Of a DNA stretch of 64,000 nt, positions 1-64,000 are shown in pieces. The stretch's first letter is position 1. Every line of letters starts with the position of its first letter. A model generated the notes under the pieces. It saw nothing but the letters and a program-made list of their open reading frames with translations. It was not told the origin of the DNA and ran no database searches. Made by a program: the position numbers and the translations under genes. The stretch is from the sequence record MK817115.1; one strand, given 5' to 3'.

Positions 1-76
1 TGTTCAAGTACTGAATACTTTTTAAAATTAAGAAAATCTGAAATATCTAACATATACAATCCTCATAAATTTAGAC

Positions 77-105
77 AAAAAATTAGTCGAGAATAAATCT
101 CGACT
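77..105 (-). terminator. rho-independent terminator
   Basis: AGTCGAGA-5nt-TCTCGACT, U-tract on minus strand. Confidence 0.7.
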
Positions 106-214
106 TGTGTTTTACTTTACCATTTTTCATTTCTTTTTTACGATCCACATGTGTGTGAGGCTTGTTAAACTCATTCATGTGTTTCTGTACGAAATTGTTT
201 ACTTTCTTAGCCAT
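83..214 (-). CDS. small basic hypothetical protein (43 aa, below track cutoff)
   Basis: Hand-translated MAKKVNNFVQKHMNEFNKPHTHVDRKKE...; ends in terminator hairpin. Confidence 0.6.
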   Translation of the reverse strand: MAKKVNNFVQKHMNEFNKPHTHVDRKKEMKNGKVKHKSRFILD

Positions 215-216
215 AC

Positions 217-690
217 TTACTCCAAACTGGGATCTTTAACTGTTAGACTTTCTATGTCACTCGCATAAAGAACTACATTGGATTGATTTTCAGACACTTT
301 AAAGTCGTGATAACTGTCTTTGACGATAAAATTATCTAATATAAACCCTTTACTACAGCACATCATAATTTTATCATCTTTGATTGTGTAGGTGTTTTTC
401 TTTTTACGTACTTCAGATTGTGGCGTAATACTATCGTTATTACGAATAACACAATCAATATATTGTTCATTTGTACTCATAGGCATACCCATGATAAACG
501 AGTTTTCAGTACTGATTGTTAGTATAAAAACGTTAGTATTTGGGTTGTGAAAAAAATCATGCATTGTCTTGCTACACAAAAATAGACATTGAATAATGTC
601 CTTCACATTAAACATTATATCATGAACTTTGAATGCGTCCAACTCTAAAATGTCATCAATTTTCCCATTTTCAACAGTTTTAATCTCCAT
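217..690 (-). CDS. hypothetical protein
   Basis: 157 aa ORF in chained minus-strand run; no FQxS motif. Confidence 0.8.
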   Translation of the reverse strand: MEIKTVENGKIDDILELDAFKVHDIMFNVKDIIQCLFLCSKTMHDFFHNPNTNVFILTISTENSFIMGMPMSTNEQYIDCVIRNNDSITPQSEVRKKKNTYTIKDDKIMMCCSKGFILDNFIVKDSYHDFKVSENQSNVVLYASDIESLTVKDPSLE

Positions 691-732
691 GATCTATCCT
701 TGATCTTCTAATGCACTCCATGTGCGTTTTTA

Positions 733-1230
733 TTAAGTCACTGCATTATACTTCTCTATAGCATTAGTAATATTTAATATAGCTTCAGGAACCATTTCTT
801 TATTGTATTCACGTTTTAAATTTTCCATTTTCTTAATAATTTCCAAGAAAAATGGCAAAATGCATGAAGTATCTGTGAAATTACATGAGTACAAAGTACT
901 CATTTGAAATAATTCACCTGAATCAATATTAAGAGATTTGTATTCCTTAACAATGTTTTCGTTTGTATTGAAAATATGAAATACTGTTCCCATGTGATGA
1001 AGATATACACCATTCTCATTTTGAATATTGCATGGTGTGATTACAATAGCAGTGTTGTCAATATTATTTACTATTGATAAACGTAGACTATGTAAACCTA
1101 AAATAACAGTACAATCACTTGAACTGCTTTGAATTTGGTCAGCAGTTTGTGTAACACTTGTAATATTTTCCCCATCAAGACAACTCTTGATTTTATCAAA
1201 TGAATTTTTCATTGATTTAGTTAGATACAT
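733..1230 (-). CDS. FQxS-family hypothetical protein
   Basis: GELFQMSTL. Confidence 0.85.
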   Translation of the reverse strand: MYLTKSMKNSFDKIKSCLDGENITSVTQTADQIQSSSSDCTVILGLHSLRLSIVNNIDNTAIVITPCNIQNENGVYLHHMGTVFHIFNTNENIVKEYKSLNIDSGELFQMSTLYSCNFTDTSCILPFFLEIIKKMENLKREYNKEMVPEAILNITNAIEKYNAVT

Positions 1231-1634
1231 TTATGAACACCTTCGAAATATTTGATTAATGATTTTATCTTATCGCTACTAATGCCATGTAAGTCAACAC
1301 CTAAACACTCGTATTGAAAAAAATCAATATCCTCAAGCGTGTTTAGATCAATTTCCACCTTATCATGACCCAACGAATTCATAATAACGTTTTTATCATT
1401 AATTGTCAAGAAAGTTTTTTTATCTGAACCTAAAAAGATTTTTACGTGTTTTTTTGGCATTACATCATAAGATAAAGATTGTGAACCATAAATGTATATG
1501 CCTTCCATTGAACCAATATCTATAAAATATAGACGAATCCCTTTGTGGTATTTTGACTCCTTAGTGATCGCCTCTATTAGTTCATCTGTGGTTGTTAACC
1601 TTGTTTCTTTCTTCTCTAAATTGCTCAAATGCAT
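1221..1634 (-). CDS. FQxS-family hypothetical protein
   Basis: DIDFFQYECL. Confidence 0.8.
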   Translation of the reverse strand: MHLSNLEKKETRLTTTDELIEAITKESKYHKGIRLYFIDIGSMEGIYIYGSQSLSYDVMPKKHVKIFLGSDKKTFLTINDKNVIMNSLGHDKVEIDLNTLEDIDFFQYECLGVDLHGISSDKIKSLIKYFEGVHKCI

Positions 1635-2055
1635 AAAATAATACCTTGATCATTTGTAATGTTTCTGACATTACATCAGCAGAAAATTGAACATCAGTGT
1701 ATTTTACCATAGTACTTTGAGTAAAGAAAGTAGCTTCAATATCATCAAGGTCAAATGGTTCATCAAATAAATTAGTACTGAACATATCAGTTTTTTTCTT
1801 ATAAGTCAACATAAACTTAGCACTGTATCTCAATACAATTTCATCTTTACTTACTAAAATTCGTGCAATGTTCTGTCTACCCAGTGTTGTAATGTTAACA
1901 TTAAACGTATTCTTTCGTGCCTCAACAATATCAACGAAATAACCATCACCTTGGTAAACGTTATGACGAACTTCTAATCCTTGTTGAACTGTATTGAACA
2001 GTGCGTCCTGGATAAAATAATTTGCAGTATCGATGTTTCCTAAAATATCTAACAT
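1582..2055 (-). CDS. FQxS-family hypothetical protein (variant motif)
   Basis: EATFFTQSTMV. Confidence 0.8.
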   Translation of the reverse strand: MLDILGNIDTANYFIQDALFNTVQQGLEVRHNVYQGDGYFVDIVEARKNTFNVNITTLGRQNIARILVSKDEIVLRYSAKFMLTYKKKTDMFSTNLFDEPFDLDDIEATFFTQSTMVKYTDVQFSADVMSETLQMIKVLFYAFEQFREERNKVNNHR

Positions 2056-2585
2056 AACTTCTCCTTTATAGCTGTCATATTTAGAAGAAATTCAGTAAGC
2101 AATTCCTCCGTAACATGCTCTGTATACCAGAATATCACAATATCTTTTGAAAGTCGTGTATTCATAAAAATATCTACTAACTCTTTGTAGTACTCTAGCG
2201 TTTCGAGATTTGTGAGAATTAACGAGTACTGAAAGAGTAATTCTTCAGTTAGATTAAATTCTGGATAAAGTAAATCATTGAACTCATGTGATGCAGTTTG
2301 AACTTGAATTCGGTCAAAGTTATTGGTTATACAACCGGAATAAATATTTCGGTGCAACTCTCTGTACAACGCAGCATAATCTATGAATTTTGCTTTAGGG
2401 TTAAAATCAAGAACACTTTCACCTTTATATGACAATCGGTGGAACGCCGAGAACATAGTCACTTCCCACGGTTGCCTAATATCTAGCTCAGTGATATCAA
2501 TATTATTGGACAGAAGAACCGTAAAAATCTCACCAATCTTTAATAGTAATTTTGTACGTGCCAGTGCTACCATCGGGTCAGTCAT
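2049..2585 (-). CDS. FQxS-family hypothetical protein
   Basis: EELLFQYSLI. Confidence 0.85.
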   Translation of the reverse strand: MTDPMVALARTKLLLKIGEIFTVLLSNNIDITELDIRQPWEVTMFSAFHRLSYKGESVLDFNPKAKFIDYAALYRELHRNIYSGCITNNFDRIQVQTASHEFNDLLYPEFNLTEELLFQYSLILTNLETLEYYKELVDIFMNTRLSKDIVIFWYTEHVTEELLTEFLLNMTAIKEKLC

Positions 2586-2998
2586 TATACACCTTCATAT
2601 TCATCAAGAAAATCTTCGATAATCATTTCAGCTTCATCCATATGCATAGCATCAACTTCAATGATGCGAACTTTAGATGCATCCCAAATCATATAACTAG
2701 GAACATTATCAGGCTCGTAGTCATTTTTGTACTGAACAGCATCGTAACCTTTCGAAATACAATGTTCAATTAGTGCACGCCACTCATCATCACTACCTAA
2801 ATCTTCACACAGAAGCACGTTATCAACATCAACTTCTAAGGTATGCAAGTATACTGTACATGCGTCTACTACGTTCAGTGGGCTTCTCAGCTTGCGTAAG
2901 GCAGCTTCCAAAGCACTGTGTTTGCCTCCCATATGAAGTCCACCATACGGGATATAAAAGTTATCAATTTTTACAGTACTCGCATGATACAGTTTCAT
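2585..2998 (-). CDS. putative ADP-ribosyltransferase-fold protein (ART-PolyVal-like)
   Basis: LYHAS...GLHMG...GYDAVQYKNDYE...YMIWDASKVRII pattern. Confidence 0.5.
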   Translation of the reverse strand: MKLYHASTVKIDNFYIPYGGLHMGGKHSALEAALRKLRSPLNVVDACTVYLHTLEVDVDNVLLCEDLGSDDEWRALIEHCISKGYDAVQYKNDYEPDNVPSYMIWDASKVRIIEVDAMHMDEAEMIIEDFLDEYEGV

Positions 2999-3007
2999 AT
3001 TTCATTC

Positions 3008-3592
3008 CTATTTCAGTACTTTAGTCAATGCTTTCACAGCGGTTTCGAGTTGAGCATAGTCGTTAATTGTAAGGTAATGAATACCATGTGCATTCATTTC
3101 AGCATCTATTTTATTATATAAATCAAACATGTCAAGGATATGATTGTATGCATATGAAGTATTTGAAACACACAATTCTTGGAACAAACGTTCTTCCAAG
3201 TCATTCACAACTTCTCCATGAATATCAAGTACTACACCATCTTTGTAAGTGTAGTACTCTTCACTCCACTCTTCAGAAAGTCGGAACAGTAACGGATTCC
3301 CGCCGAACACTTCCATGTCATAGGAATTTATCTCACTAAGTAGTGTTTCACCTGGTTCTGGTGTGAAGTCAAAATATGCGAGTGTTGTACCATCATAGTC
3401 CTTGAGTGATATACCAGTATGATTTAAGGTTACTTCACCATAATTATTATTCTTGAACTTGATTTTGATATTAATCTCAATGTATTTTATTGTCTCATCA
3501 TCACTGAAATTGTAATCAATTTTATACTTTTTCCAAAGAAGTTTGATATCTTTGAAGTACTTTAATTTACTTTCAATTTCTTTAAAGTCCAT
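3008..3592 (-). CDS. FQxS-family hypothetical protein
   Basis: EERLFQELCV. Confidence 0.85.
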   Translation of the reverse strand: MDFKEIESKLKYFKDIKLLWKKYKIDYNFSDDETIKYIEINIKIKFKNNNYGEVTLNHTGISLKDYDGTTLAYFDFTPEPGETLLSEINSYDMEVFGGNPLLFRLSEEWSEEYYTYKDGVVLDIHGEVVNDLEERLFQELCVSNTSYAYNHILDMFDLYNKIDAEMNAHGIHYLTINDYAQLETAVKALTKVLK

Positions 3593-4184
3593 CTGGAACC
3601 ACCATTTCTTGAATGTGCTTACATTTTATATTTGCCATATTGGTATGTAATATAATGCTGTGTTTACGCAATGATTTTACTTTGTAGCACTCATTGAGTA
3701 CCGAAATAATTCCCCATAACTCTTCTACACTAATAGTGATAGGTTCACTTGTACTCAGTTGCATCAGTGCTGCTTGAACATCATCTTTGTTATTAATAGT
3801 GAACTGGATTCCTCTTTTGAGAATTTTAGTTTTTGGATTGTACTCAGCTAATACATCACCTTCTGGATAACCCTCATGAAGTAATAATGTTGTTTCAAAA
3901 TCACCGCAGTTGAAGTTAATTTCATCATAATCAGGTACACAAATGTTCCCTTCCCCGTACTCATTAGGTTCAGATTCTAGTGTTAAAATACGCTGAGTCT
4001 CATTGCTCAGGATGATAGAATCATTCCAGTACTGGGTAGTGAATGCTCTACGTTTCTTTTGAAAGCACATACTCGACATTGACCCATACTTCTTGTATAT
4101 GGACTTCTTGAACTCAATAGCAGCAGGAGCCACCTTGATAACTTCACGAATTAAGTCAATAGCTTCTTGATAACTTTTTCTCAT
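3582..4184 (-). CDS. FQxS-family hypothetical protein (variant motif)
   Basis: QAALMQLSTS. Confidence 0.8.
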   Translation of the reverse strand: MRKSYQEAIDLIREVIKVAPAAIEFKKSIYKKYGSMSSMCFQKKRRAFTTQYWNDSIILSNETQRILTLESEPNEYGEGNICVPDYDEINFNCGDFETTLLLHEGYPEGDVLAEYNPKTKILKRGIQFTINNKDDVQAALMQLSTSEPITISVEELWGIISVLNECYKVKSLRKHSIILHTNMANIKCKHIQEMVVPDGL

Positions 4185-4732
4185 TTATCGTATCCATATA
4201 AAATATGATCTAGTGTACTTTGGACTTCTTCATGAAAGAATGAAGGGTAAACTTGTATTAATTTATCTTTAAGTTCAAGGGAATGGCATAGTTCTAATGT
4301 TTTGTAACAATCCTCGTACTGTGCCAGATCATGTAATGTACTTAACTGAAAATGTTGTTCTTCGGAGTACAATAAATCATAAACCATATTATCGGATAAA
4401 AGATTAGATTTGATTGAAGGATCAAGTACTGTCTGGTGGTGACCAACCCAAAAGATAGCTTTTGAGTTAATGTTATTACAACCCCATCCTTTCCCCATCT
4501 TTTGGTGAATAGCAAATACACAGGAATCATACAAATTAATGCTCAGACGTTCTTCGTCTGCATGGATAGTTACACCATCAATAGATAGTGTATATTTGAA
4601 ATCCATAGCCCCCTCACTTCGTGCACGAGAACTAAAGACCAGATATCGATGAATTATGGTATTGATTTTATCTGTCCATCCATCAACACATTTGGATGCA
4701 CATAATGTAAAAAGATCATGATTGTAGTTCAT
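4181..4732 (-). CDS. FQxS-family hypothetical protein
   Basis: EEQHFQLSTL. Confidence 0.85.
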   Translation of the reverse strand: MNYNHDLFTLCASKCVDGWTDKINTIIHRYLVFSSRARSEGAMDFKYTLSIDGVTIHADEERLSINLYDSCVFAIHQKMGKGWGCNNINSKAIFWVGHHQTVLDPSIKSNLLSDNMVYDLLYSEEQHFQLSTLHDLAQYEDCYKTLELCHSLELKDKLIQVYPSFFHEEVQSTLDHILYGYDK

Positions 4733-4750
4733 AAAATTCTCCTTTAGGAC

Positions 4751-4788
4751 AATGTATCATACAAAAATACCAGAGTCAACCCCTGGTA
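4751..4788 (-). promoter_or_regulatory. terminator hairpin with sigma70 -35 inside it
   Basis: Minus: TACCAGGG-GTTGA-CTCTGGTA-TTTTT; TTGACT-17-TACATT. Confidence 0.55.
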
Positions 4789-4793
4789 CGAAT

Positions 4794-5375
4794 TTAATCC
4801 ATCATAAGTGGGATAATTGCCCATATCTTTTTCATAATCATATCTTCAGTAAAAACAAATGTTTTAGGAGCAGTATATGATATTGACACACCAAATGGAA
4901 GTTTGATTGCATCATCAATTATATTATGAATATCAAACCATGTTTTAACATAATCATACGGTGGAAGTTCATGAATTGTACTTAACTGAAAGTAATTCTC
5001 TTCACCAAAATCACTATATTCAATTTCACAAATTTTAGTGAATTGATGATTCCATTTAGATATAATACTATTTTTATTATTGTACATAGTAGTTCTATGC
5101 ATAAAACCATTTTTGCTAGTATGATTTGATATTACGTTTTCTTCAATGTCAGTATCTATTTTAAAATTCATATCAAAGTTGTAGTACGGACTTGACGATT
5201 CTTTGAATTTTAAATGTAAATTGCGATTGTTATTAATTTCAATTTCAATACAAAACACATCTGAATCAAAACGATTAAACTTGTAATCGTTATCTTCCGG
5301 TAGATTCTGTATTTTTTTCATAATACTAAGCATAGGGTGTACTACACTTTTAATAAAATCATTTGTTATTTTCAT
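4794..5375 (-). CDS. FQxS-family hypothetical protein
   Basis: EENYFQLSTI. Confidence 0.85.
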   Translation of the reverse strand: MKITNDFIKSVVHPMLSIMKKIQNLPEDNDYKFNRFDSDVFCIEIEINNNRNLHLKFKESSSPYYNFDMNFKIDTDIEENVISNHTSKNGFMHRTTMYNNKNSIISKWNHQFTKICEIEYSDFGEENYFQLSTIHELPPYDYVKTWFDIHNIIDDAIKLPFGVSISYTAPKTFVFTEDMIMKKIWAIIPLMMD

Positions 5376-5868
5376 AGTATTCCTTTAGAACTTTATATGA
5401 TTCAACAATACTATCTTGTGTATAATTTGAACTATATACAACAGCACTTGTTTTAGTTGACCATAGATATGACATAAAGGTTATAACACTACTACATGGA
5501 CTTAATGTATTGTTTTGAAATTCAATTTCTTCAATGTTATCAGTACTGGTATAGATGAATTGGAAAGTACCCATTGATTTATTGGACAGCGATACTATAG
5601 TAGAATCCGTACCAGGACTATACATGAATGTCTCATTACTAATTGAACTATCATTAGTATATGATGGTTTGGGAATATAAATCAAACGCATGATATCGCG
5701 TTCAAGACCTGACTTATTACTTTCCACCAAAGAAATCATATCTATATTTGATATATGTTCAACACTGACATGGAACTTTTTGTCGAGAATCACATCTCCA
5801 TGAGAATTTTTATATGAAGACAAAATCTCATACATCTCAACTAATTCGCGTGCATTTAATAAACTCAT
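5359..5868 (-). CDS. FQxS-family hypothetical protein
   Basis: EEIEFQNNTL. Confidence 0.85.
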   Translation of the reverse strand: MSLLNARELVEMYEILSSYKNSHGDVILDKKFHVSVEHISNIDMISLVESNKSGLERDIMRLIYIPKPSYTNDSSISNETFMYSPGTDSTIVSLSNKSMGTFQFIYTSTDNIEEIEFQNNTLSPCSSVITFMSYLWSTKTSAVVYSSNYTQDSIVESYKVLKEYYENNK

Positions 5869-6293
5869 GTTTTGTCTCTTAATGAAAGAATATCCTTAGT
5901 ATAAACTGAAACAGAAATATGATTATATTTCATCATTAATTTATACACATAAGAAGCTAGTACTAAATCGTAAATTAATTTAGTATTATACAGTACTTGG
6001 TATTGTAACGCAAGTGAATCAATATCATCTTTACTTTCAATATCCAGAAATGTACCGAAAAATGTAGTACCGTAGAGATGAAAAGTGGAATTAATGCAAT
6101 CAATGCATTCATTGTCCAATAGAGTAGATGCTGATGCCCTCGGTGAATCCCAAATAGTCACTGCGTGTATGCCCTCAACGAACAAATCTATCCATATTTT
6201 GTGTCGTTGTCTTTTTTTTGTTTTATAATTTTCTGGATTTGAAAGTGTAGTTTCAATTATATCCCATATGTACAAACAATCATCTCTTGTCAT
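5865..6293 (-). CDS. hypothetical protein (weak FQxS-like motif)
   Basis: DSLALQYQVLY; ATGA-coupled to neighbours. Confidence 0.8.
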   Translation of the reverse strand: MTRDDCLYIWDIIETTLSNPENYKTKKRQRHKIWIDLFVEGIHAVTIWDSPRASASTLLDNECIDCINSTFHLYGTTFFGTFLDIESKDDIDSLALQYQVLYNTKLIYDLVLASYVYKLMMKYNHISVSVYTKDILSLRDKT

Positions 6294-6871
6294 TGTAGCA
6301 CCTTATCCATTGCTGCATTTAATGCTTTTAAACGATCAACATTCAAAGTATTGAAGATGTACGTTCCTAAAATGTGGAAATCGAATTGGTTCTTTTTGTA
6401 TGTATGATAAATTAAACTACAAAAAACAACAGTACTAAGAACCTCTTCAGGTATAACAGTGCTCATCTGGAACAGTTCTTCTTCAACTGTACTTGAATCT
6501 GGATTGATAGCTTTTAACACATACTCTTCATCACCGAATAGTACTTTAATATTATATAAAACACCAATAGTACTAATATGGAATGGGTGATGTGAAAAAC
6601 TTCCATCATCCTTAATTTGTATATCGGTTCTAATCTCACACTCTTCATTACTTTTACTTTTATTTTTTACAATACAAATATTTCTGGCCCCAGAAATAGT
6701 AAGAATACCGTGGTCGTAATATTCATTTGACCAACATTTAGATGAAATTGATACATCACGGATGAGATATTGTTTTTCAATTTCTTTCGCACTACCAACA
6801 ATTGATAGCATTTTTTTACTGATATCATATAATAACTGATGGCGTTCTGTCATATAACTATAAGCGTTCAT
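6290..6871 (-). CDS. FQxS-family hypothetical protein
   Basis: EEELFQMSTV. Confidence 0.85.
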   Translation of the reverse strand: MNAYSYMTERHQLLYDISKKMLSIVGSAKEIEKQYLIRDVSISSKCWSNEYYDHGILTISGARNICIVKNKSKSNEECEIRTDIQIKDDGSFSHHPFHISTIGVLYNIKVLFGDEEYVLKAINPDSSTVEEELFQMSTVIPEEVLSTVVFCSLIYHTYKKNQFDFHILGTYIFNTLNVDRLKALNAAMDKVLQ

Positions 6872-7442
6872 ATTTTTCCTTAACAGATTCTATATTTTGA
6901 AGTAGTGTATTCAGAACATCAGTCTTGCAATTGATAAAATCATTGTACATAACTAGTTCACCACAATCAAGAATTTTTGCAGTATCGTAACAAAGCATTA
7001 AGTACTCGAATTCTTTGTAATTGTCCAACAAGGATTTCTGGAAAATGAATGCATCTCGAATATCTTCACTTTGGTCTAATTCTGGTGGAACATCCAACCC
7101 AATAAATCCATCATCTTCACTGAAATTAGATTCTACAATTTTATTCATTTTTTCATGTAATGCATTCGCAAATACCATATTAGAAGAAATAGAACCAATA
7201 CGTTCACGATTTCTGGATGTGCGAATGTACATAGTAATCGTATCCCATGAACTTTTAATTTTTTTAGAAAATTCATAAGTTTTATATACATCCAACTGAA
7301 CTGATCCAAAACGATGTTTGGATTTGTTTTCAATTTTCAGTCGATAATCATCAAATTCAACAATTTCTGTAATGTCATGAATCTCTGAAAGTTCTGCAAT
7401 GTCATGCATGAGTCTCAAAATTTTAGTTCTGATATGGTTCAT
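6858..7442 (-). CDS. FQxS-family hypothetical protein
   Basis: DAFIFQKSLL. Confidence 0.85.
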   Translation of the reverse strand: MNHIRTKILRLMHDIAELSEIHDITEIVEFDDYRLKIENKSKHRFGSVQLDVYKTYEFSKKIKSSWDTITMYIRTSRNRERIGSISSNMVFANALHEKMNKIVESNFSEDDGFIGLDVPPELDQSEDIRDAFIFQKSLLDNYKEFEYLMLCYDTAKILDCGELVMYNDFINCKTDVLNTLLQNIESVKEKYERL

Positions 7443-8017
7443 TGTGCATCCTCGAATTTAACAGGTACATGTTCATTAATGAAATTCTTAAGAGCCTGTA
7501 CTAAATCCTCTAATTCTTTTGTACTGTATTTTAAAATAGTTTTAAAGTGAATCAAATCTTTTCTTTCCATGATCTTTGGAATTTTATATGCTAACTCTAA
7601 ACAGCGTACAGTACTGGCATCATACAAAAGGTTTGCGTTGAACATTAGAACATTGTATTCATCAGATGAAATTTTATAATTATATGTATCAATCACTTCA
7701 TGTGTGTATAAATTCTTATACACAATTTTATTCTCACTGAAGTTTGAGCAAACACACAGATGATCGTTGTAAAATGAAGAACGATAATCTTGTTTACGTT
7801 GTACATCTGCTATGATTTGTAATACTGTATATTTTTCTTCAGAATCCAACTCAATGTTAGCATAACTGCTCGCAGTTTCAGATACAAGGATATTGATGTT
7901 ATATTTCTCATTAACTTTAATGTACTGGCGTGAGCCAGTATCAGGAATGAACTTAAAACAATGCTTCAGAAGTAATGTGACTTCTTTAATTAATTCAGTA
8001 CTCATAGATTCCTCCAA
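7439..8017 (-). CDS. hypothetical protein (variant FQxS motif)
   Basis: NVLMFNANLLYD. Confidence 0.8.
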   Translation of the reverse strand: MEESMSTELIKEVTLLLKHCFKFIPDTGSRQYIKVNEKYNINILVSETASSYANIELDSEEKYTVLQIIADVQRKQDYRSSFYNDHLCVCSNFSENKIVYKNLYTHEVIDTYNYKISSDEYNVLMFNANLLYDASTVRCLELAYKIPKIMERKDLIHFKTILKYSTKELEDLVQALKNFINEHVPVKFEDAQ

Positions 8018-8032
8018 CTCTAGTTAAAATCA

Positions 8033-8094
8033 AGTATAACACACCTGAATGCTCTTGTAAAGCCATAAACACAAAAAGACCCATACGGGTCTTT
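8033..8094 (-). promoter_or_regulatory. terminator followed by sigma70 promoter
   Basis: AAAGACCC-4nt-GGGTCTTT + U-tract; TTTACA-17-TATACT. Confidence 0.65.
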
Positions 8095-52640: not shown

Positions 52641-52670
52641 TACCGGCAATTGTAAAGATTTGTAAACTAC

Positions 52671-53578: not shown

Positions 53579-53671
53579 TTTTTTAATCCTCTTATATAGT
53601 GGGGAACTATTCCCCACCTGATGTAAAACATTATACGCTTTTAAACATAGTTTGCAAGTACTTTATTAAAC

Positions 53672-55405: not shown

Positions 55406-56033
55406 TAGCTTTCTTTCATTATTCAGTACTGATATTCTTGAGAACTACCCGACTACAAACATCATTATATCCCACAAATCATAAACGTCCCAACGTAAAT
55501 TTCAACTTTCGAAGATCCAACTTTTATTTCATAGGTACTCCAAAATTTTTAGGATCGAGATTTAGGATGGAGTACTAACCAACTTTTTGCTGGAGCCTCA
55601 AGGGGTAATGGAATTTTACCCCGAAGGGTAAAGGGGTAATTGAAATTAAGGTGAAAGTAATAATTCAGTACTAATCATTGCGTGATTACTTTTGATTACA
55701 TTTGATGTAATTTGAAAAATGGAAAAGGAGCTTGGAAACTACAAAGTACGGCAGACTTCCTCTGCCTACTTAGTGGCATATCAGTACTGAATCCTTCCCG
55801 TGCATTCTTGAGCATTCTTGTCTATACTAATCAGTACTGAATCATATATAATCATTCTGTGATTCTACGGTGCTCATATAAATGTTTATATATGATTACT
55901 TATGACTACCTATGATTACGGGGTTTAGCCTGGGGAGAATCCTAGTGATCGCATTTGTCCAGGCTGAATTTTAACAATTCGCCTGTACATAAAGGTTGTT
56001 CACTAGGAGCTTCCCCTGTCTCTATGTGTTTAA

Positions 56034-56225
56034 TTACTTTCTATATATAAGCATTAAGATATAGTAGTACTGATTATACTGTACATTCTCTTTAATATTA
56101 TAAGGGTCTATAGCAATCTCGGTACATCTGTTAAATGCATATCTATTAAATGCCAGTGGAATTATAGATCTAATCCATACTTGTTCATTTTCTTTTAGTT
56201 TACTTATATAGAAGTTTTTATACAT
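56034..56225 (-). CDS. (H/Y)KE(F/Y)Y-family ~60 aa protein
   Basis: MYKNFY...LMLIYRK. Confidence 0.8.
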   Translation of the reverse strand: MYKNFYISKLKENEQVWIRSIIPLAFNRYAFNRCTEIAIDPYNIKENVQYNQYYYILMLIYRK

Positions 56226-56240
56226 AGTATTCTCTATTAA

Positions 56241-56423
56241 TTAATATGATAGTACTAGTGTTAGTACTGAGCACAATTGTTCTTTATAGTTCTTAGGGTA
56301 TATAGAATCTTTTATGCACTCATTGAAGTGCCATAGGTATAATCTTGGGTCGCATTCTTTATATATTCTTACGGGGACGAATGTTAGTTTTCTTATATAG
56401 AATTCTTTATGTTCTTTATTCAT
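56241..56423 (-). CDS. (H/Y)KE(F/Y)Y-family ~60 aa protein
   Basis: EHKEFY...FNECIKDS. Confidence 0.8.
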   Translation of the reverse strand: MNKEHKEFYIRKLTFVPVRIYKECDPRLYLWHFNECIKDSIYPKNYKEQLCSVLTLVLSY

Positions 56424-56424
56424 A

Positions 56425-56613
56425 TTAGTACCTGAATATAAGTAGGATTATGTTATAGTACTGGTTAGTACTGCAATGATTCTCTATACATCGATTAACA
56501 GTTATGGAATAGCTATATCTGGCGTAAGCATTATCCAGCGGGATTTTACATTGAGCACTTAGAGAAAGTACAGTAGGTAGTGTATTCAAATAGAAGTCTT
56601 TGTAATTATTCAT
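56425..56613 (-). CDS. (H/Y)KE(F/Y)Y-family ~60 aa protein
   Basis: YKDFY...ILLIFRY. Confidence 0.8.
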   Translation of the reverse strand: MNNYKDFYLNTLPTVLSLSAQCKIPLDNAYARYSYSITVNRCIENHCSTNQYYNIILLIFRY

Positions 56614-56815
56614 ACAGGAATAGTATACCTATGATACCTGAGTACAGGTTAGTACTGTTACCATCTTCGTTTGCGTTTAAAGTCATTTGAATACAATTAT
56701 TGTAGCATACTCTGCCGAAAAATGTATTAGTACTTAAAGGTGGAGTAGTCCTTAGAAACATTTGTTCTGAGGGGCTTATGTATTTGGAGTAGAATTCTTT
56801 ATGTTCTTTATTCAT
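56606..56815 (-). CDS. (H/Y)KE(F/Y)Y-family protein, close paralog of 59618..59827
   Basis: EHKEFYSKY...STNTFFGR..YNNCI. Confidence 0.85.
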   Translation of the reverse strand: MNKEHKEFYSKYISPSEQMFLRTTPPLSTNTFFGRVCYNNCIQMTLNANEDGNSTNLYSGIIGILFLYE

Positions 56816-56820
56816 ATTAG

Positions 56821-57006
56821 TTAGTGTCTGTATATAAGTAATAGTAAGAATACGTACTGCACATCTTCATCTTTAGTATTGAGTACTGTACGTATTGCGT
56901 CATTAAACAAGAATATAGTACTTGGGTCATGAGAATTTAAAGGGGTTCTGGGTACGGCATGTTTGTAGTTCCCTTTAACAAATTGTGTGTAGTATTCTCT
57001 ATGCAT
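56821..57006 (-). CDS. (H/Y)KE(F/Y)Y-family ~60 aa protein
   Basis: MHREYY...LLLIYRH. Confidence 0.8.
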   Translation of the reverse strand: MHREYYTQFVKGNYKHAVPRTPLNSHDPSTIFLFNDAIRTVLNTKDEDVQYVFLLLLIYRH

Positions 57007-57007
57007 A

Positions 57008-57193
57008 TTAGTACCTATATATTAGGGCGATAATGTAGTACAATTCATATGGAATGTAATTTGGGGTGATCGCACACTGTGTATGGTAAATGAATTGTTC
57101 GGTATTTTTCTTATCCTTGATATCTATTGGGATTAGTGGTATAAGCATTTGGGAGTTTAGATCGAGATGGCTTAAGTAGAATTCTTTATGCAT
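57008..57193 (-). CDS. (H/Y)KE(F/Y)Y-family ~60 aa protein
   Basis: MHKEFY...IALIYRY. Confidence 0.8.
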   Translation of the reverse strand: MHKEFYLSHLDLNSQMLIPLIPIDIKDKKNTEQFIYHTQCAITPNYIPYELYYIIALIYRY

Positions 57194-57202
57194 ATTGTTC
57201 TT

Positions 57203-57391
57203 TTAGAATACGAAAGCTAGGTACAGGGTATGATACAGTACTCGATGATAGCTGTCAAAATCTAGTATACATGCTTTAGTGCACATAGTAAAGTACACTT
57301 TATCGTTTTGTGCATTGATACCGCGAGGTTTATCTAATAGATTAGTACTGAGGTACATTGGGAAATATTTTGTGTAGTATTCTTTATGCAT
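57203..57391 (-). CDS. (H/Y)KE(F/Y)Y-family ~60 aa protein
   Basis: Start trimmed to MHKEYY. Confidence 0.8.
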   Translation of the reverse strand: MHKEYYTKYFPMYLSTNLLDKPRGINAQNDKVYFTMCTKACILDFDSYHRVLYHTLYLAFVF

Positions 57392-57392
57392 A

Positions 57393-57575
57393 TTAGTACC
57401 TGAATATAAGTAGGATAGTGTTATATAGCTGGTCATAACTACTACTATTTTCTATACTTCGTTCTATGCAGTTATTGAATCCCAGTACTGCCAAATCGTT
57501 ATCCATAGGGACTTTGTATCTGGCGTAGTGTTCAAAAATGCTGGGGAGAAATTGTGTGTAGTATTCTTTGTGCAT
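57393..57575 (-). CDS. (H/Y)KE(F/Y)Y-family ~60 aa protein
   Basis: MHKEYY...ILLIFRY. Confidence 0.8.
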   Translation of the reverse strand: MHKEYYTQFLPSIFEHYARYKVPMDNDLAVLGFNNCIERSIENSSSYDQLYNTILLIFRY

Positions 57576-57576
57576 A

Positions 57577-57762
57577 TTAGTACCTATATATTAGTAAAAG
57601 GATGTGATACAGTACTCGATTATAGTCTTCAATATATATCGAGGATTTAGTGCACTGAATGAAGTAGTCTTTTTCGTAGTTTTTTTCTATACCCAATGGT
57701 TCTGTTGGTACAAGGTGTTGGAGATACATTGGGAGTTTCTCTATGTAGTATTCTTTATACAT
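57577..57762 (-). CDS. (H/Y)KE(F/Y)Y-family ~60 aa protein
   Basis: MYKEYY...LLLIYRY. Confidence 0.8.
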   Translation of the reverse strand: MYKEYYIEKLPMYLQHLVPTEPLGIEKNYEKDYFIQCTKSSIYIEDYNRVLYHILLLIYRY

Positions 57763-57771
57763 ATATTATCC

Positions 57772-57972
57772 TTAGTACTGGAACGCAAGGTACAGGGTGT
57801 GGTAAAGTTGTACTTGATAATTGTTTTCATTAGCTTCTTCATTAAGTACTTGTTCAGTACATGTACGGAAGTAATCAGCTTCATATATACAGTCAATACC
57901 GCGAGGTTCATCTTCTAATAGATTTCCTTGTAGAAACTTTGGTAGTTCTTTTATGTAGAATTCTTTATACAT
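57772..57972 (-). CDS. (H/Y)KE(F/Y)Y-family ~60 aa protein
   Basis: Start trimmed to MYKEFY. Confidence 0.8.
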   Translation of the reverse strand: MYKEFYIKELPKFLQGNLLEDEPRGIDCIYEADYFRTCTEQVLNEEANENNYQVQLYHTLYLAFQY

Positions 57973-58636
57973 AGTTTGTAATATACGTAATGAGGTGATG
58001 CATTTTCTTATCAGTACTGATAATTTCCTGTACATGTTTTGTCAGATTGTACGCGTTTTTATAGAGTACTGGATTATCGATTACAGTACTGTACATGAAT
58101 AGTTCTTCTTCCTGTAGTTCTTTGTGTTCTAGTTCTTTGAGGAATTCTACAATTGATTTAGTTTCTTCTGTACGTTGTGCTTGCCAGAAGTGCATATTCT
58201 CGTGTACTTTTTTTGCACCTATACTGTATATACCACCCATTTGGAATTGTGCTGTATTGACATCGTGGGAGGTGTTACAATTCCCGAAGAAGTATGTATT
58301 CCCGAAGTATAGCATTAAAGTGCACGGGGTATTATCCAACTGCATATGGATGATGAAGGATGCGTTCTTTAGTACCTTTGTGCTCGTATTAGTACTCAAT
58401 ACTTTTAAATCAGTATTATAGATATTCATATAATGAACAGCTATATTATTTTTCTTCATGTACAATCCCAGGTTCTTTGATACGTTAACTCCATTTGTAC
58501 TGGATTTTTCCTTTTTATTTCGTTTCTTTAGTACATTCGGGTGATACGTATATGCAGATGTAACTGATTCTGCCTGAATACTATTGAGGTACTTAAAGTG
58601 CTTAAGGTATTGTTTGCTGTGTGCATTAAGTTTCAT
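57965..58636 (-). CDS. FQxS-family-like protein (outlier)
   Basis: EEELFMYSTVID. Confidence 0.8.
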   Translation of the reverse strand: MKLNAHSKQYLKHFKYLNSIQAESVTSAYTYHPNVLKKRNKKEKSSTNGVNVSKNLGLYMKKNNIAVHYMNIYNTDLKVLSTNTSTKVLKNASFIIHMQLDNTPCTLMLYFGNTYFFGNCNTSHDVNTAQFQMGGIYSIGAKKVHENMHFWQAQRTEETKSIVEFLKELEHKELQEEELFMYSTVIDNPVLYKNAYNLTKHVQEIISTDKKMHHLITYITNYV

Positions 58637-58646
58637 TTGGTTTCCT

Positions 58647-58826
58647 TTATATAGATGCCAGGGCGAGGATTTCCCTGTAGGGATTATCTTGTGTTAGTAC
58701 AGCATAAATGCAGTTATTGAGATTAATATTTTTAGTACTTTTTGTTCCTAGTTTGTAGTACTTCACGAAGGTGTCGTACATGAAACGGTCTTTTATGGTT
58801 ATACGTTCTCTATAGAATTGTTGCAT
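58647..58826 (-). CDS. (H/Y)KE(F/Y)Y-family protein (59 aa, below cutoff)
   Basis: Hand-translated MQQFYRERIT...NNCIYAVLT...YREILALASI. Confidence 0.7.
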   Translation of the reverse strand: MQQFYRERITIKDRFMYDTFVKYYKLGTKSTKNINLNNCIYAVLTQDNPYREILALASI

Positions 58827-58834
58827 AGTATTCC

Positions 58835-59017
58835 TTAAATAGCGATTAGTTTCATTACTTCTCTGTATGTGTACTTTTCGTTTTGTGCATCTCTTGTGAC
58901 GACATATAGGAAGGTGTGTTTATCTTTTTTGTTCCCGCAATTGTAGAAAATATTGAACTTATTGAAGTTGAATCTTTCGGCGTGTTGTAGTTTAGTTAAA
59001 TAGAATTCTATGTTCAT
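58835..59017 (-). CDS. (H/Y)KE(F/Y)Y-family ~60 aa protein
   Basis: MNIEFY...YTYREVMKLI. Confidence 0.8.
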   Translation of the reverse strand: MNIEFYLTKLQHAERFNFNKFNIFYNCGNKKDKHTFLYVVTRDAQNEKYTYREVMKLIAI

Positions 59018-59025
59018 TTTCTTCC

Positions 59026-59211
59026 TTACATTTCAATAAGTTTCAGTACTGCTCGGTACGTGTACTTAGTTGTCAGTGCTTCTTTAATAGAAATACAGAA
59101 GTAATGTTGTTTGTCTCTTATACTGCCGCGTTTGTAGTACCACACATGGGAGTTGTGACTGTACTTGTCTCTGTCGGATAGTTGTTGGTAGTAGTAGCTT
59201 ATATGATTCAT
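59026..59211 (-). CDS. (H/Y)KE(F/Y)Y-family ~60 aa protein
   Basis: HISYY...YTYRAVLKLI. Confidence 0.8.
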   Translation of the reverse strand: MNHISYYYQQLSDRDKYSHNSHVWYYKRGSIRDKQHYFCISIKEALTTKYTYRAVLKLIEM

Positions 59212-59420
59212 TATAATGTAATTAGCCTTACTATATTAAAGTACTCGGTCCCTGGTGTACCTTGTAGTATATTACGCACGACATTTTTTTGGTGCTGGAT
59301 GATTGCTGAAGGTGCGGTTCTTTTTAGTTTTTTTAAAGTACTGAATTCTTGTTTAAGTATGAACTGTACATCTTTAGGGAGAATATCTATGTAGTACTGA
59401 TGAATGTTTGTAGTTTTCAT
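59211..59420 (-). CDS. (H/Y)KE(F/Y)Y-family-like protein
   Basis: IHQYYIDILP...VVRNILQG..YFNIVRLI. Confidence 0.8.
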   Translation of the reverse strand: MKTTNIHQYYIDILPKDVQFILKQEFSTLKKLKRTAPSAIIQHQKNVVRNILQGTPGTEYFNIVRLITL

Positions 59421-59430
59421 ATAGCACCTT

Positions 59431-59625
59431 TTAGAACTTAAAGATGAGGTTCAGGATAGAGCGGTACTTAGTTTCAGGGAACTGATGTTCTATTGCATAA
59501 CGTGTCGCCATCCTGAAATCGTAATTGTAATATAGATTATCCTTTCTCATAGGTGGTGCTAAAGAGAATGATAGCTGGTCTTGCTTGTGTAGTTTACTAC
59601 CATAGAAATCTTTATGATTATTCAT
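59431..59625 (-). CDS. (H/Y)KE(F/Y)Y-family ~60 aa protein
   Basis: HKDFY...YRSILNLIFKF. Confidence 0.8.
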   Translation of the reverse strand: MNNHKDFYGSKLHKQDQLSFSLAPPMRKDNLYYNYDFRMATRYAIEHQFPETKYRSILNLIFKF

Positions 59626-59827
59626 AGAAGTAGATTAGTCCTATTAAACCTGAGTACATAATATTTTTGTTATTGCATTCGATTGCTTCTAGAGTACTAC
59701 GTATACAATTATTAAAGCAATCTCTACCGAAGTGAGTATTGGTACTTACAGGTGATACACTCCTTAGAAACAATTGTTCTTCGTTGCTAAGGTATTTGGT
59801 GTAGAATTCTTTATGTTCAGTATTCAT
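59618..59827 (-). CDS. (H/Y)KE(F/Y)Y-family protein, close paralog of 56606..56815
   Basis: EHKEFYTKY...STNTHFGR..FNNCI. Confidence 0.85.
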   Translation of the reverse strand: MNTEHKEFYTKYLSNEEQLFLRSVSPVSTNTHFGRDCFNNCIRSTLEAIECNNKNIMYSGLIGLIYFYE

Positions 59828-59828
59828 A

Positions 59829-60032
59829 TTAGTACTCGATTAAAAGGGCAAGGATATAATAGTATTGCATACTTTCTGCCCCTTGTAAAGCATTTCTTAT
59901 GATATTATTCCTGTACGAGTTCAGGAGTTTAGGACAACGTTTGTAGTGTATAATAGTATTTTGTGTATACAGTAGGCTTTCTCGTAGACCTTTTGTTGGT
60001 AGTGCATCGATGTAGTACTGTTCGATATTCAT
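59829..60032 (-). CDS. (H/Y)KE(F/Y)Y-family-like protein
   Basis: IEQYYIDALP...IIRNALQG. Confidence 0.8.
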   Translation of the reverse strand: MNIEQYYIDALPTKGLRESLLYTQNTIIHYKRCPKLLNSYRNNIIRNALQGAESMQYYYILALLIEY

Positions 60033-60256
60033 ATAGATAGCAGTACTAAGATTTTTGATAATTGTTTATTGCTATCCCCGCAGATGTTGCTGTGTAAAAT
60101 ACTCACAATGAGGGTATCAATTGCATTGTTCATCATAAGGGTGCATCCTGGACTATTATAATTTTTTAGCTCAATTAGCCACGAACTATCCGAGAGAAAC
60201 TCCCCGTACTCTAGTTCATTTAGAGTATTGAGGTAGTACTTAAGAGTATTTGTCAT
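60029..60256 (-). CDS. (H/Y)KE(F/Y)Y-family-like protein
   Basis: LKYYLNTL...NNAIDTL; AGGAG RBS. Confidence 0.75.
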   Translation of the reverse strand: MTNTLKYYLNTLNELEYGEFLSDSSWLIELKNYNSPGCTLMMNNAIDTLIVSILHSNICGDSNKQLSKILVLLSI

Positions 60257-60281
60257 GTGTAGTTCTCCTTATATTCCTTCT

Positions 60282-60310
60282 ATAGTACAACAGTACTGAA
60301 AGGATGTCAA
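60282..60310 (-). promoter_or_regulatory. sigma70 promoter driving the 56-60 kb array
   Basis: TTGACA-17-TACTAT, AGTACT in spacer. Confidence 0.7.
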
Positions 60311-61507: not shown

Positions 61508-61515
61508 ATTAATAT

Positions 61516-61579
61516 GCCAGTACTTGATACTGGCTTTTCTTTTTGTATTAAATATAGTATAATGAATAAAGGAGGAATT
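61516..61579 (+). promoter_or_regulatory. terminator-promoter-RBS cassette, copy 1
   Basis: GCCAGTA-CTTGA-TACTGGC-TTTTCTTTTT-GTATTAAATATAGTATAATGAATAAAGGAGG. Confidence 0.85.
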
Positions 61580-62722
61580 ATGTTACCTTTTGCAAGAATG
61601 GTTAAGTACGGGAATATTGCACCTGCACAAATCGGTAGATATAAAATATACAGTTCATCTTCTTCACTATTTTTATTGGATACCCAAAAACACAATTTGT
61701 ACAGTACATCGAACATTAATTATACTAGTGGTACAGGTAATGTTGAGCCTAAATTTGTGTTAAGTGCAACTAATGTTAAAAGATTATTACTATCTGATAA
61801 TAGTTGTGCAATGCAAATATATGAAGATATGAATGGGCGTGCAGCGATGTGTGGCACAAGAACTGCATATAGTGGGGTTGCAAATGATAATGTACTGGTA
61901 TGGACGGATTGCACTACATGGTTCACAAATGTAGGGTTGAATGTATCAGATATTCAGTACATGTCTGGTTTTTATAATCTGAAACTAAACATAGTTATGA
62001 ATAATGGTGATTTGTGGTGTAGTGGGAAAAACAACACTACTACTATGTCATCATTTGGTAATAGCACAAATATCGATTCATTCAATCAGTTTACCAAAAT
62101 AACAACAATATCAAATGTTATTAAAGCCACCGGGAATATATACTTATGTGCAGATAATACTTTATGGGGATGTGGTTTTAACTCTTACTATCAGTTAGGG
62201 ACAGGTAATCAAACATCCAGTATTAATTTGATTATGATGGCTTCTAATGTTATCGACTGTAATGTTGGTCTTCAAAATACTTATTACTTGACTAATAATA
62301 AAGAACTTTATGGATGTGGTACACAATTTGGTACAACTTACGGGAATGAATTTGGAACAGGAAGGCAGGGAACATCAATACAATATAAGACTCCTACTAT
62401 AATTTTCACAAATGCAGATGGTCTGGCTGTTTGTGTCGGTAATATGTCTACTCATGTTATTCAATATGATAAAGTTTTTAGTTCTGGTAATAATGCCCTT
62501 GCACAGTTGGGTGTAGGCAACCGTGACAATGTGTACACATATACACAATCATTTGATAATTTCAAAATGGATTCTTCTATAGTACGTGCAAACGTTGGAA
62601 CATTGATAATGACAGCGGACAATAAGTTATATTACAGTGGGAGAAATGATGTTGTTATGGGTGGAACAAGCACACAATACACGACGGTTTTCAGTGAAGT
62701 TAATATGTCATTTATACAATGA
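61580..62722 (+). CDS. RCC1/BLIP-II-like beta-propeller protein
   Basis: Close paralog of 60359..61507; start trimmed to MLPFARM. Confidence 0.85.
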   Translation: MLPFARMVKYGNIAPAQIGRYKIYSSSSSLFLLDTQKHNLYSTSNINYTSGTGNVEPKFVLSATNVKRLLLSDNSCAMQIYEDMNGRAAMCGTRTAYSGVANDNVLVWTDCTTWFTNVGLNVSDIQYMSGFYNLKLNIVMNNGDLWCSGKNNTTTMSSFGNSTNIDSFNQFTKITTISNVIKATGNIYLCADNTLWGCGFNSYYQLGTGNQTSSINLIMMASNVIDCNVGLQNTYYLTNNKELYGCGTQFGTTYGNEFGTGRQGTSIQYKTPTIIFTNADGLAVCVGNMSTHVIQYDKVFSSGNNALAQLGVGNRDNVYTYTQSFDNFKMDSSIVRANVGTLIMTADNKLYYSGRNDVVMGGTSTQYTTVFSEVNMSFIQ

Positions 62723-62728
62723 ATTAAT

Positions 62729-62794
62729 GCCAGTACTTGATACTGGCTTTTCTTTTTTGTATTAAATATAGTATAATGAATAAAGGAGGGAATT
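62729..62794 (+). promoter_or_regulatory. terminator-promoter-RBS cassette, copy 2
   Basis: Same as copy 1 apart from T/G-tract length. Confidence 0.85.
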
Positions 62795-63937
62795 ATGTTA
62801 CCTTTTGCAAGAATGGTTAAGTACGGAAATGAAGCACCAGAACCAAAACCTCTATTTAAAAATAGATTACAAGCAAATTATAATACTCGTTTTTATTTGC
62901 ATGTTAATGGTGACTTGTACTGGTATGGTTCATCTTCATTTGGACAAGGTGGTAATGGTTCATTACAATCATCCACCGTATGGACCCGTGTGAATAATAA
63001 TATTGAACGTTACTGGGGTGGTGTTCTTGGTTCCATTGCCATTAAGAATGATGGAACTATTTGGTTCACAGGTGCTAGTATAGTAATGCCACAAATCGGA
63101 ACAAATACAAATGGGGTTTGGATTGATGTAACCCAGTACTTCACTGATTTTGGTGTCAGTGCTGATGATATTGATGGTATTGCTGTTGGACAGAATTTGC
63201 GTGTATTTTTGAAAAATGGAAAATGGTTCTACTGTGGTGCTGGCGAGGGTGGTGTATTTGGTAACGCATCAACAGCTAATGTCACATCGTTCAGATACAG
63301 CACTATAGAAAATGTTAAAAGTTATGGCTGTTCTTTGCTCAGTACTGGGTTAGTTCTTGATGATGGTTCCTATTGGTATGCAGGAAATACTGTTGCTCCT
63401 GGTAGTACAACAACATCAAATATATTAAGTTTTACAAAAGACAATACGATCACCAATGCTATACAAGCTGTAAATACATACCGTACTTCATATATATTTC
63501 TTAATGATGGTTCAGTGAAGGTTGCTTCACCAAATGCATATGGTCAAGCTGGTGTAGGTAGAGTATCAGCAGTACCAATGAGTACATTAATTCCCAATTT
63601 ATCATTCCAAGGTGAAATAGAGTTGGTGGGTGGTTTATCCAACAACGAAGGGAATGGATGTGTTGTTAAAAATAATAATAAGTTATATACTTGTGGTCGA
63701 AATACCTATGGTGCATGTGGTGTTAATCAAACATCCGAAAATATACTAACTTTCACCGAAATGGTTCTTGATGCATTAGAAGGAAGACGAATTTCAGGCT
63801 TCGTAATTGATAATTTCTATTCAATGATAATTGATGAAAATAACAATTTGTATATGAGTGGTTTGGCTGAACTTGGAAATGTTCCAGCCGTGAGAGTTCC
63901 AACCAGAGTCCCCGATTCCCTTCTACCGTGGAAATAA
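62795..63937 (+). CDS. RCC1/BLIP-II-like beta-propeller protein (more divergent)
   Basis: LYWYGSSSFGQGGNG, LYTCGRNTYGACGVN; MLPFARMVKYGN start. Confidence 0.85.
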   Translation: MLPFARMVKYGNEAPEPKPLFKNRLQANYNTRFYLHVNGDLYWYGSSSFGQGGNGSLQSSTVWTRVNNNIERYWGGVLGSIAIKNDGTIWFTGASIVMPQIGTNTNGVWIDVTQYFTDFGVSADDIDGIAVGQNLRVFLKNGKWFYCGAGEGGVFGNASTANVTSFRYSTIENVKSYGCSLLSTGLVLDDGSYWYAGNTVAPGSTTTSNILSFTKDNTITNAIQAVNTYRTSYIFLNDGSVKVASPNAYGQAGVGRVSAVPMSTLIPNLSFQGEIELVGGLSNNEGNGCVVKNNNKLYTCGRNTYGACGVNQTSENILTFTEMVLDALEGRRISGFVIDNFYSMIIDENNNLYMSGLAELGNVPAVRVPTRVPDSLLPWK

Positions 63938-63945
63938 TGTAATAT

Positions 63946-64000
63946 GCCAGTACTTGATGCTGGCTTTTCTTTTTTGTATTAAATATAGTATAATGAATAA
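63946..64000 (+). promoter_or_regulatory. terminator-promoter cassette, copy 3 (next gene lies beyond the window)
   Basis: Same cassette with one A>G change giving a U-G wobble in the stem. Confidence 0.85.

Follow-up and report, generated by a model that had tools for sequence, protein, structure and literature searches.

In cyanobacteria, the iterated palindrome HIP1 (GCGATCGC) is a selected word whose function long resisted explanation (PMC5861425, PMC4390886). It is the nearest known phenomenon to the one we describe here in the final 64 kb of the genome of Escherichia phage vB_EcoM_phAPEC6 (phAPEC6)—an iteration of the hexamer AGTACT at many times its expected frequency, interrupted by a gene cluster whose sense strand is free of the trinucleotide ACT. 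As with HIP1, AGTACT is a short palindrome that occurs in many-fold excess, in all coding frames as well as in non-coding DNA, and that is more conserved than its background. Unlike HIP1, it is viral, A+T-rich and 6 bp long (8 bp with its preferred flanks), it has no evident cognate methyltransferase, and it combines fixed positions in promoters with a density peak in the phage's terminal repeat. Chi, KOPS and DNA uptake sequences offer a partial parallel, being likewise dispersed in many copies, selected for number over position and able to tell genomes apart; but those signals are asymmetric and strand-skewed, whereas AGTACT is symmetric and shows polarity only within a single 7.6-kb domain. 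Phage repressor operators over -35 and -10 elements are also palindromes in fixed register, two per promoter and on one helical face, whereas more than 85% of AGTACT copies lie outside promoters and the site is just 6-8 bp long. Phages are expected to lose 6-bp palindromes, and AGTACT, as the recognition site of ScaI and of its E. coli isoschizomer Eco255I, belongs to a palindrome class under known selection in phages; here, however, the sign is opposite, with a 7.7-fold excess genome-wide.

Throughout, the window refers to the whole 64,000-nt stretch that we analysed, which megablast places with 100% identity at positions 288,599-352,598 of MK817115.1, the record of this 352.6-kb Asteriusvirus and RaK2-like jumbo phage. 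The window (positions 1-64,000) holds 270 copies of AGTACT, with the consensus (C)AGTACT(G), against 21.5 expected from base composition and 18.3 +/- 3.9 (maximum 29) in dinucleotide-preserving shuffles. This 12.6-fold excess over composition makes AGTACT the most deviant hexamer of the window at order 0 (z = 53.6), and it keeps the first rank when tested against an order-3 Markov null built on tetranucleotides (270 vs. 110.8, z = 15); in the phAPEC6 genome as a whole there are 918 copies where 120 are expected. The GTAC core is itself 3.2-fold enriched in the window, where 42% of all GTACs are part of an AGTACT. The avoidance of 6-bp palindromes that the original prediction took as the rule for phages is evident in the same window for other palindromes (CAGCTG, ACCGGT, TCTAGA, AAGCTT and others are depleted), with AGTACT deviating in the opposite direction. 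The hand counts behind that prediction (9 copies for nt 1-3020, 8 for 35821-37020) were reproduced exactly. Its claim that the word is over-represented along the whole window holds for the excess but not for the extent, as two stretches (20,468-28,165 and 30,832-35,825) are empty of AGTACT and the RCC1 genes near the window's end have few copies. Outside these two gaps, no 5-kb bin of the genome falls below about 1 AGTACT per kb.

Most copies in the window (165 of 270) lie wholly within annotated genes, spread over the three frames (65/42/58) and encoding Ser-Thr, x-Tyr-x or x-Val-Leu, while 104 are intergenic, giving a density of 8.5 per kb in non-coding DNA compared with 3.2 per kb in coding DNA. 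The 164 coding copies scored against codon-aware nulls compare with 52.9 +/- 6.2 when synonymous codons are shuffled inside each gene, 42.0 +/- 6.0 when they are pooled over genes, and 21.6 when codon order is permuted (z = 18-32 across the three nulls, z = 18-20 for the synonymous shuffles alone). A comparable excess (84 vs. 26.2 +/- 4.6, z = 12.6, codon-preserving null) is found in 13 long core and late genes, among them those for DNA polymerase, sheath, portal, NrdA and a 10-kb virion protein. Codon usage and peptide motifs are excluded as causes by the three codon-aware nulls together with the spread over frames. The excess thus persists under the tetranucleotide- and codon-aware nulls under which the original prediction had allowed that it might vanish, and these results support selection, rather than composition or codon usage, as its source.

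The surroundings and near variants of the word indicate what is being selected. The base preceding AGTACT is C in 48-50% of copies and the base following it is G in 40-42%, which shows the flank preference to be real, and the resulting preferred form CAGTACTG is found in 198 copies across the genome, where 3.5 would be expected. The sixth position of AGTACN is T in 69% of cases vs. 35% by composition, and sense-strand counts of NGTACT and AGTACN are similar; given in addition that many copies, those in promoters, lie upstream of transcription starts (see below), the selected object appears to be the palindrome as a duplex. Genome-wide, the one-sided variants show a mild sense-strand bias. Variants changed at positions 1/6 or 3/4 have a mild excess that is not seen for changes at positions 2/5, a pattern that argues against a plain mutational halo. 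Neighbours reached by transition or deamination are found at 0.94 (AGTATT), 1.19 (AATACT) and 1.86 (AGTGCT) of expectation. Once the 918 palindromes are removed, GTACT is only about 1.2-fold enriched genome-wide, and squaring the enrichment of the one-sided variants gives roughly that of AGTACT.

Comparison with related phages shows that both the sites and their number are under selection. Over window positions 1-19,683, which align to phage EC.P1 at 82.8% identity, 80% of AGTACT copies are intact, compared with 42% for all hexamers, placing AGTACT first among the 75 hexamers with at least 25 copies. Losses and gains relative to EC.P1 pass mostly through AGAACT and TGTACT, and the losses show no C-to-T excess. 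In the alignable blocks of a more distant Klebsiella RaK2-like phage (71% identity), 33% of AGTACT positions are kept vs. a background of 18.5%, while overall density is retained between the genera despite this positional turnover. Together with the codon-aware nulls, these values bear out the original proposal that AGTACT is positively selected. The Klebsiella phage, whose terminase is 74.5% identical to that of phAPEC6, has the AGTACT enrichment, the flank preference and a dense zone of its own, and AGTACT is also enriched in two IMG/VR contigs, 366 kb and 346 kb long (terminase 73-81% identical). No such enrichment was found in nine contigs with terminases about 43-45% identical. AGTACT provides a simple sequence signature for the RaK2-like clade. 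Note additionally that IMG/VR contigs at about 45% terminase identity have an excess of other words, namely CACTGG, ACTGGT and CTGGTG. The host presents the opposite picture, with 3 copies (0.06 per kb) vs. 11.6 expected in a 50-kb sample of E. coli K-12, so that AGTACT is about 40-fold denser on the phage than in this sample, and over 100-fold denser in the terminal repeat. We found no mention of AGTACT in the papers on phAPEC6, fEgEco12, RaK2 and CBB, and querying the searchable full texts for AGTACT together with phage did not turn one up either.

AGTACT is not evenly distributed over the window, and its density peaks at the physical end of the genome. The ends of the linear genome of phage G17 map to window positions 35,695 and 55,770, which identifies the interval between them as the equivalent of a direct terminal repeat of roughly 20 kb that the circular phAPEC6 record conceals; the terminal repeat of phage fEgEco12 measures 20,993 bp (PMC13070987). 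The interval 35,695-55,770 contains 139 AGTACT copies (6.9 per kb) and about 50 small minus-strand early genes, which run from the 55.8-kb end towards lower coordinates. The adjoining, mostly non-coding stretch at 55,771-60,300 contains another 33 copies (7.3 per kb), many of them as CAGTACTG or TCAGTACTGA, and the 55,770 end itself lies within a 2-kb non-coding stretch, 13 nt ahead of a CAGTACTG. This lineage of 350-kb phages keeps AGTACT at about one copy per 380 bp overall and about one per 140 bp in the terminal repeat. Two further placements described in the original prediction were recovered, namely extended AGTACT palindromes of 10-14 bp in the 54-56 kb region, such as the perfect 14-bp palindrome ATTCAGTACTGAAT at 54,225-54,238, and the plus-strand terminator hairpin of an RCC1 cassette at 61,516-61,545 (GCCAGTA-cttga-TACTGGC followed by a T run), in which AGTACT spans the junction of stem and loop. 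The next two RCC1 genes have the same terminator arrangement, with AGTACT at 62,732 and 63,949.

Within the terminal repeat, AGTACT also occupies fixed positions in promoters. In front of each gene of the repeat stands a sigma-70-type promoter close to consensus, together with a conserved 5' hairpin, and AGTACT is contained in 28 of the 46 strict sigma-70-like intergenic promoters between 35.7 and 60.3 kb. Among these 46 promoters its offsets from the -10 hexamer peak sharply at two values, -7 (13 cases) and -27 (11 cases), the former copies lying directly upstream of the -10 element (AGTACT-G-TATAAT) and the latter at the -35 hexamer's upstream edge (AGTACTTGCA). These two positions are 20 bp apart and therefore share one face of the helix; because they are fixed, spacings of 20-23 bp between AGTACT copies are in excess (28 vs. 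11 expected), with no other short-range excess. In the minus-strand early promoter at 45,185-45,225, for instance, both positions are filled (AGTACT-A-TTGACA-N9-AGTACT-G-TATAAT), with the copies 22 bp apart and abutting the -35 and -10 elements. The register is conserved in the Klebsiella phage, where a single 50-kb piece contains 15 copies of the AGTACTGTATAAT arrangement and 6 of the AGTACTTGCA arrangement. The presence of AGTACT inside promoters, as originally reported, is thus confirmed and sharpened to fixed offsets of the kind seen in operators. Most early transcripts (36,000-54,100) carry this G+C-rich conserved hairpin, such as GGGGAGAATAGTTCTCCCC, at their 5' end, downstream of the promoter, and it accounts for a local excess of CCAGGG/CCCTGG-type words.

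The larger of the two AGTACT gaps proved to be part of a separate and, as far as we can tell, undescribed feature that is more surprising than the AGTACT excess itself. Between 20,543 and 28,165, in a minus-strand block comprising gp448c-gp462c, the intergenic DNA between them and the edges of gp447c and gp463c, ACT is wholly missing from the sense strand, whatever the frame, against an expected count of about 148; this includes 1,185 nt of non-coding DNA. Equivalently, the plus strand lacks any AGT over 7,623-7,626 nt (record positions 309,138-316,764), so the mRNAs of 15 genes are free of ACU. The antisense strand is not depleted of ACT (59-75 per 2.5 kb), and for no other trinucleotide does the 352-kb genome show a gap one-fifth as extreme. 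Threonine codons in the domain are restricted to ACA, ACC and ACG, and TCT is 3.3-fold depleted. The domain begins, on its upstream side, just past an AGTACT beside a promoter-like element in the end of gp463c, and ends about 45 nt into gp447c. None of the 15 domain proteins and their neighbours gave a significant Pfam match.

An equivalent domain is present in relatives of phAPEC6, at 7,649 bp in G17, 7,511 bp in 121Q and 8,676 bp in EC.P1, the last with 71-80% nucleotide identity to phAPEC6. In Turkey5, where tested proteins of the cluster are only 24-31% identical, it spans 4,402 bp plus 717 bp, and the equivalent region of UE-S1 retains about 17 AGT vs. about 130 expected; no such domain was seen within 143 kb sampled from the Klebsiella phage. 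An assembly or base-calling artefact can be rejected as the source of the AGTACT gaps, as both recur in the independently sequenced G17, 121Q, EC.P1 and Turkey5, and also in UE-S1. The plus strand of the phAPEC6 domain carries 66 GWACT (with both GTACT and GAACT enriched) and no AGTWC, and on the sense strand AGTACA (34 vs. 11.7, z = 7.5) and AGTTCA (18 vs. 6.5, z = 5.6) exceed the codon null, indicating that the motif pressure persists within the domain, solely in forms that contain no sense ACT.

With regard to the excess elsewhere, selection for density with positional turnover, the contrast with the host, the maximum in the terminal repeat and the two promoter positions all fit a DNA-binding protein, and we propose that (C)AGTACT(G) is the recognition site of a lineage-specific protein of this kind that would both mark phage DNA and gate early promoters. 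From sequence evidence, we assign this reading a probability of roughly 0.37. The predicted reader protein would be specific to the RaK2-like jumbo-phage lineage and would most simply bind duplex DNA as a homodimer, and the roughly 40-fold difference in density between phage and host would confine its occupancy almost wholly to phage DNA. At the -10 and -35 elements the bound protein would overlap the footprint of RNA polymerase and could thereby act as a switch for early transcription, in the simplest case shutting it off while the reader protein accumulates. The hundreds of intragenic copies may hold the protein at high concentration along the genome, to mark, organise or shield it. The original prediction had proposed three functions for the site, as a mark for a DNA-binding or nucleoid protein, as the target of a modification enzyme, or as a means of self/non-self discrimination during host DNA degradation; judged by the promoter positions and the host contrast, the DNA-binding mark fits best among them, and a role in host-DNA degradation would be purely conjectural. 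The upkeep of AGTACT implies a sequence-reading component still to be discovered, possibly one that marks the genome, switches early promoters or signals replication.

Several observations weigh against a DNA-binding protein as the reader. Pfam scans of about 590 open reading frames gave no obvious match for a cognate regulator; many of the early promoters may derive from duplicated cassettes, in which case their sharp offsets would be partly inherited; and a repressor alone does not explain the roughly 2 sites per kb retained in late structural genes. The enrichment of AGTACA and AGTTCA in the ACT-free domain suits a strand-wise GWACT at least equally, and a palindrome enriched by about the square of its one-sided variants is also what two strand-wise units, if independent, would give. 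These last two points lead to the strongest rival, in which a strand-specific pentamer, 5'-GWACT-3', is read by a tracking enzyme, as a primase-helicase site or as a Chi-like signal for a helicase-nuclease, and AGTACT is merely the cheapest way of placing the unit on both strands. The retention of GWACT on a single strand between 20.5 and 28.2 kb (66 vs. 0) and a turnover relative to EC.P1 that runs largely via AGAACT and TGTACT would both follow, and the background density of 1.5-2.5 copies per kb is on the scale of Okazaki fragments. Primases recognise triplets, T7 primase for example reading GTC inside GGGTC or TGGTC; for the phage primase-helicase the core triplet would be ACT, with certain bases favoured on its 5' side. 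Yet lone GTACT is barely enriched, priming sites have no reason to hold fixed positions in promoters, the genome shows no polarity outside the domain, and the ban on ACT from one strand would go unexplained, since an unused priming site should be neutral; on balance, we consider this pentamer an unlikely unit of selection. More improbable still is a site-specific modification of the DNA at AGTACT, methyl or other, that serves as a self tag or nuclease block, with copies accumulating since each one protects when modified. HIP1, the closest analogue, has been tied to orphan methyltransferases (PMC4390886, PMC5861425), the phage itself encodes two methyltransferases (PMC7247149), and Eco255I would pose a serious threat to a genome whose 918 sites were left unmodified. 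These two enzymes are, however, a C5-cytosine methylase and a phage Dam-family enzyme, with no others found in phAPEC6, and the literature indicates other targets, leaving no evident AGTACT methyltransferase; bisulfite and digestion data for RaK2 indicate methylation of the CpG and Dam/Dcm types and not at AGTACT (PMC3622015), and ten enzymes, SpeI (ACTAGT) among them, cut the DNA of the related phage fEgEco12 in line with the in silico prediction (PMC13070987). Nor do the losses relative to EC.P1 and the values for AGTATT and AATACT carry a C-to-T signature of deamination.

The remaining explanations have less to recommend them. Fast decay of motif-rich early transcripts, with (G)UACU as an endoribonuclease cleavage or processing site (much as T4 RegB cuts at GGAG), appears very improbable. 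It would match the fact that AGTACT is densest in early transcription units, enterobacterial toxins of the MazF/PemK family do cut U^ACU and U^ACG (PMC10864209), and, as the ACT-free cluster makes plain, the phage is not indifferent to ACU in its RNA or to ACT on one strand. What is selected, though, is the palindrome and not the sense pentamer (NGTACT and AGTACN being about equal on the sense strand), many promoter copies lie upstream of the transcription start, the late genes too carry about 2 sites per kb, and no MazF/PemK-like RNase was found by Pfam among about 440-590 phage open reading frames. Non-adaptive origins, whether by mutation bias, by biased repair of the Dcm/Vsr type or by duplication of motif-bearing cassettes, are largely refuted by the data, even though promoter cassettes and paralogous families are common in the window and the phage has a C5 methylase: no frequent hexamer is better conserved than AGTACT, its coding sites have diverse flanks and use all frames, unique core genes are enriched as well, and density is kept across genera despite turnover. 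Biased repair in particular would have depleted the transition neighbours, which is not the case. Least credible of all is that AGTACT decoys or recruits a host protein such as SlmA, by which the phage would block cell division or titrate a factor. The 12-bp consensus for SlmA, GTGAGTACTCAC, does carry AGTACT at its centre (PMC3020112), but it requires G at position 1, T at position 2 and a purine at position 3, mirrored after ACT, and the phage flanks are wrong, the preceding base being C in 48% and G in just 5% of copies; GAGTACTC occurs in only 4 of the 918 sites, and at least three of six flank matches are found in 64 sites vs. 115 expected.

As for the ACT-free domain, we think it best read as immunity to an ACU-cutting nuclease, given that the ban is independent of frame, specific to one strand and follows the sense strand of a co-directional cluster, as immunity to an endoribonuclease would produce. 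The closest parallel is with ACA-less mRNAs that escape MazF, in which a 3-base word is likewise wholly absent from the sense strand in all frames and is reachable by synonymous choice; unlike in that case, the purge here covers 15 genes together with their intergenic DNA, and in a phage. It extends to every NNACT, a broader range than the U^ACU and U^ACG cut by the MazF relatives, and we know of no plain ACU-specific nuclease in E. coli. A cause at the DNA level, with an enzyme acting on one strand, is the alternative. DarT-type ADP-ribosylation, with single-stranded DNA as its substrate, was considered in this respect and does not fit, as DarT2 uses TNTC and DarT1 has no consensus. Between 200 and 290 kb of the record, phAPEC6 also encodes a set of RNA-repair-type domains, comprising a polynucleotide kinase-phosphatase, an RNA ligase 1, a 2H phosphoesterase, a cyclic-phosphate-processing receiver domain and PTH2, which suggests that host defences cutting RNA are a real pressure on this phage.

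It is possible, if doubtful, that AGTACT and the ACT-free cluster are two sides of one ACT-based system. In such a system a single-strand or RNA agent acting at (G-W-)ACT, either a host defence nuclease or an enzyme of the phage, would have led to the purging of ACU from a 15-gene operon, keeping it expressed during the agent's activity, while AGTACT would serve elsewhere as a dense double-stranded mark of self. If true, this would be the first operon-scale viral recoding against a triplet-specific nuclease, and would point to an undescribed ACU-specific defence in E. coli or Salmonella. Whatever its cause, the cluster is a rare natural instance of large-scale motif purging, and offers a handle both on a possible triplet-specific nuclease defence of enterobacteria and on the function of 15 conserved early genes.

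The second AGTACT gap, at 30,832-35,825, appears to be of a different nature. It lies within and around a tandem array of 20 paralogous minus-strand genes of about 70 amino acids each (29,642-35,597), beside the boundary of the terminal repeat. In this gap GTAC falls short of the codon-shuffle null. We rejected the idea of a polar domain mirroring the first one, since the gap belongs to a tandem array of paralogs and its strand pattern matches the codon null. Most simply, a unit without the motif would have been amplified recently.

Some further features of the genome and the window can be noted. Despite its Dam-family and C5 methyltransferases, phAPEC6 has only 601 GATC vs. 1104 expected, and CpG at 0.74 of expectation. 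In the record's annotation, almost all genes of the window are small, of unassigned function and on the minus strand, with three plus-strand RCC1-repeat genes at the window's end. Pfam matches among the 149 open reading frames of the window comprised one ParE-like toxin, one DksA/TraR zinc finger, one GNAT acetyltransferase, two copies of DUF7249 and one of DUF7230; the toxin, the zinc finger and the acetyltransferase were considered in relation to AGTACT, and none of them accounts for the motif. Finally, positions 1-20,600 form a long co-directional block with paralogous families of 120-190-amino-acid proteins (8 and 6 members), in which TGTACT and TGAACT are likewise raised on the plus strand.

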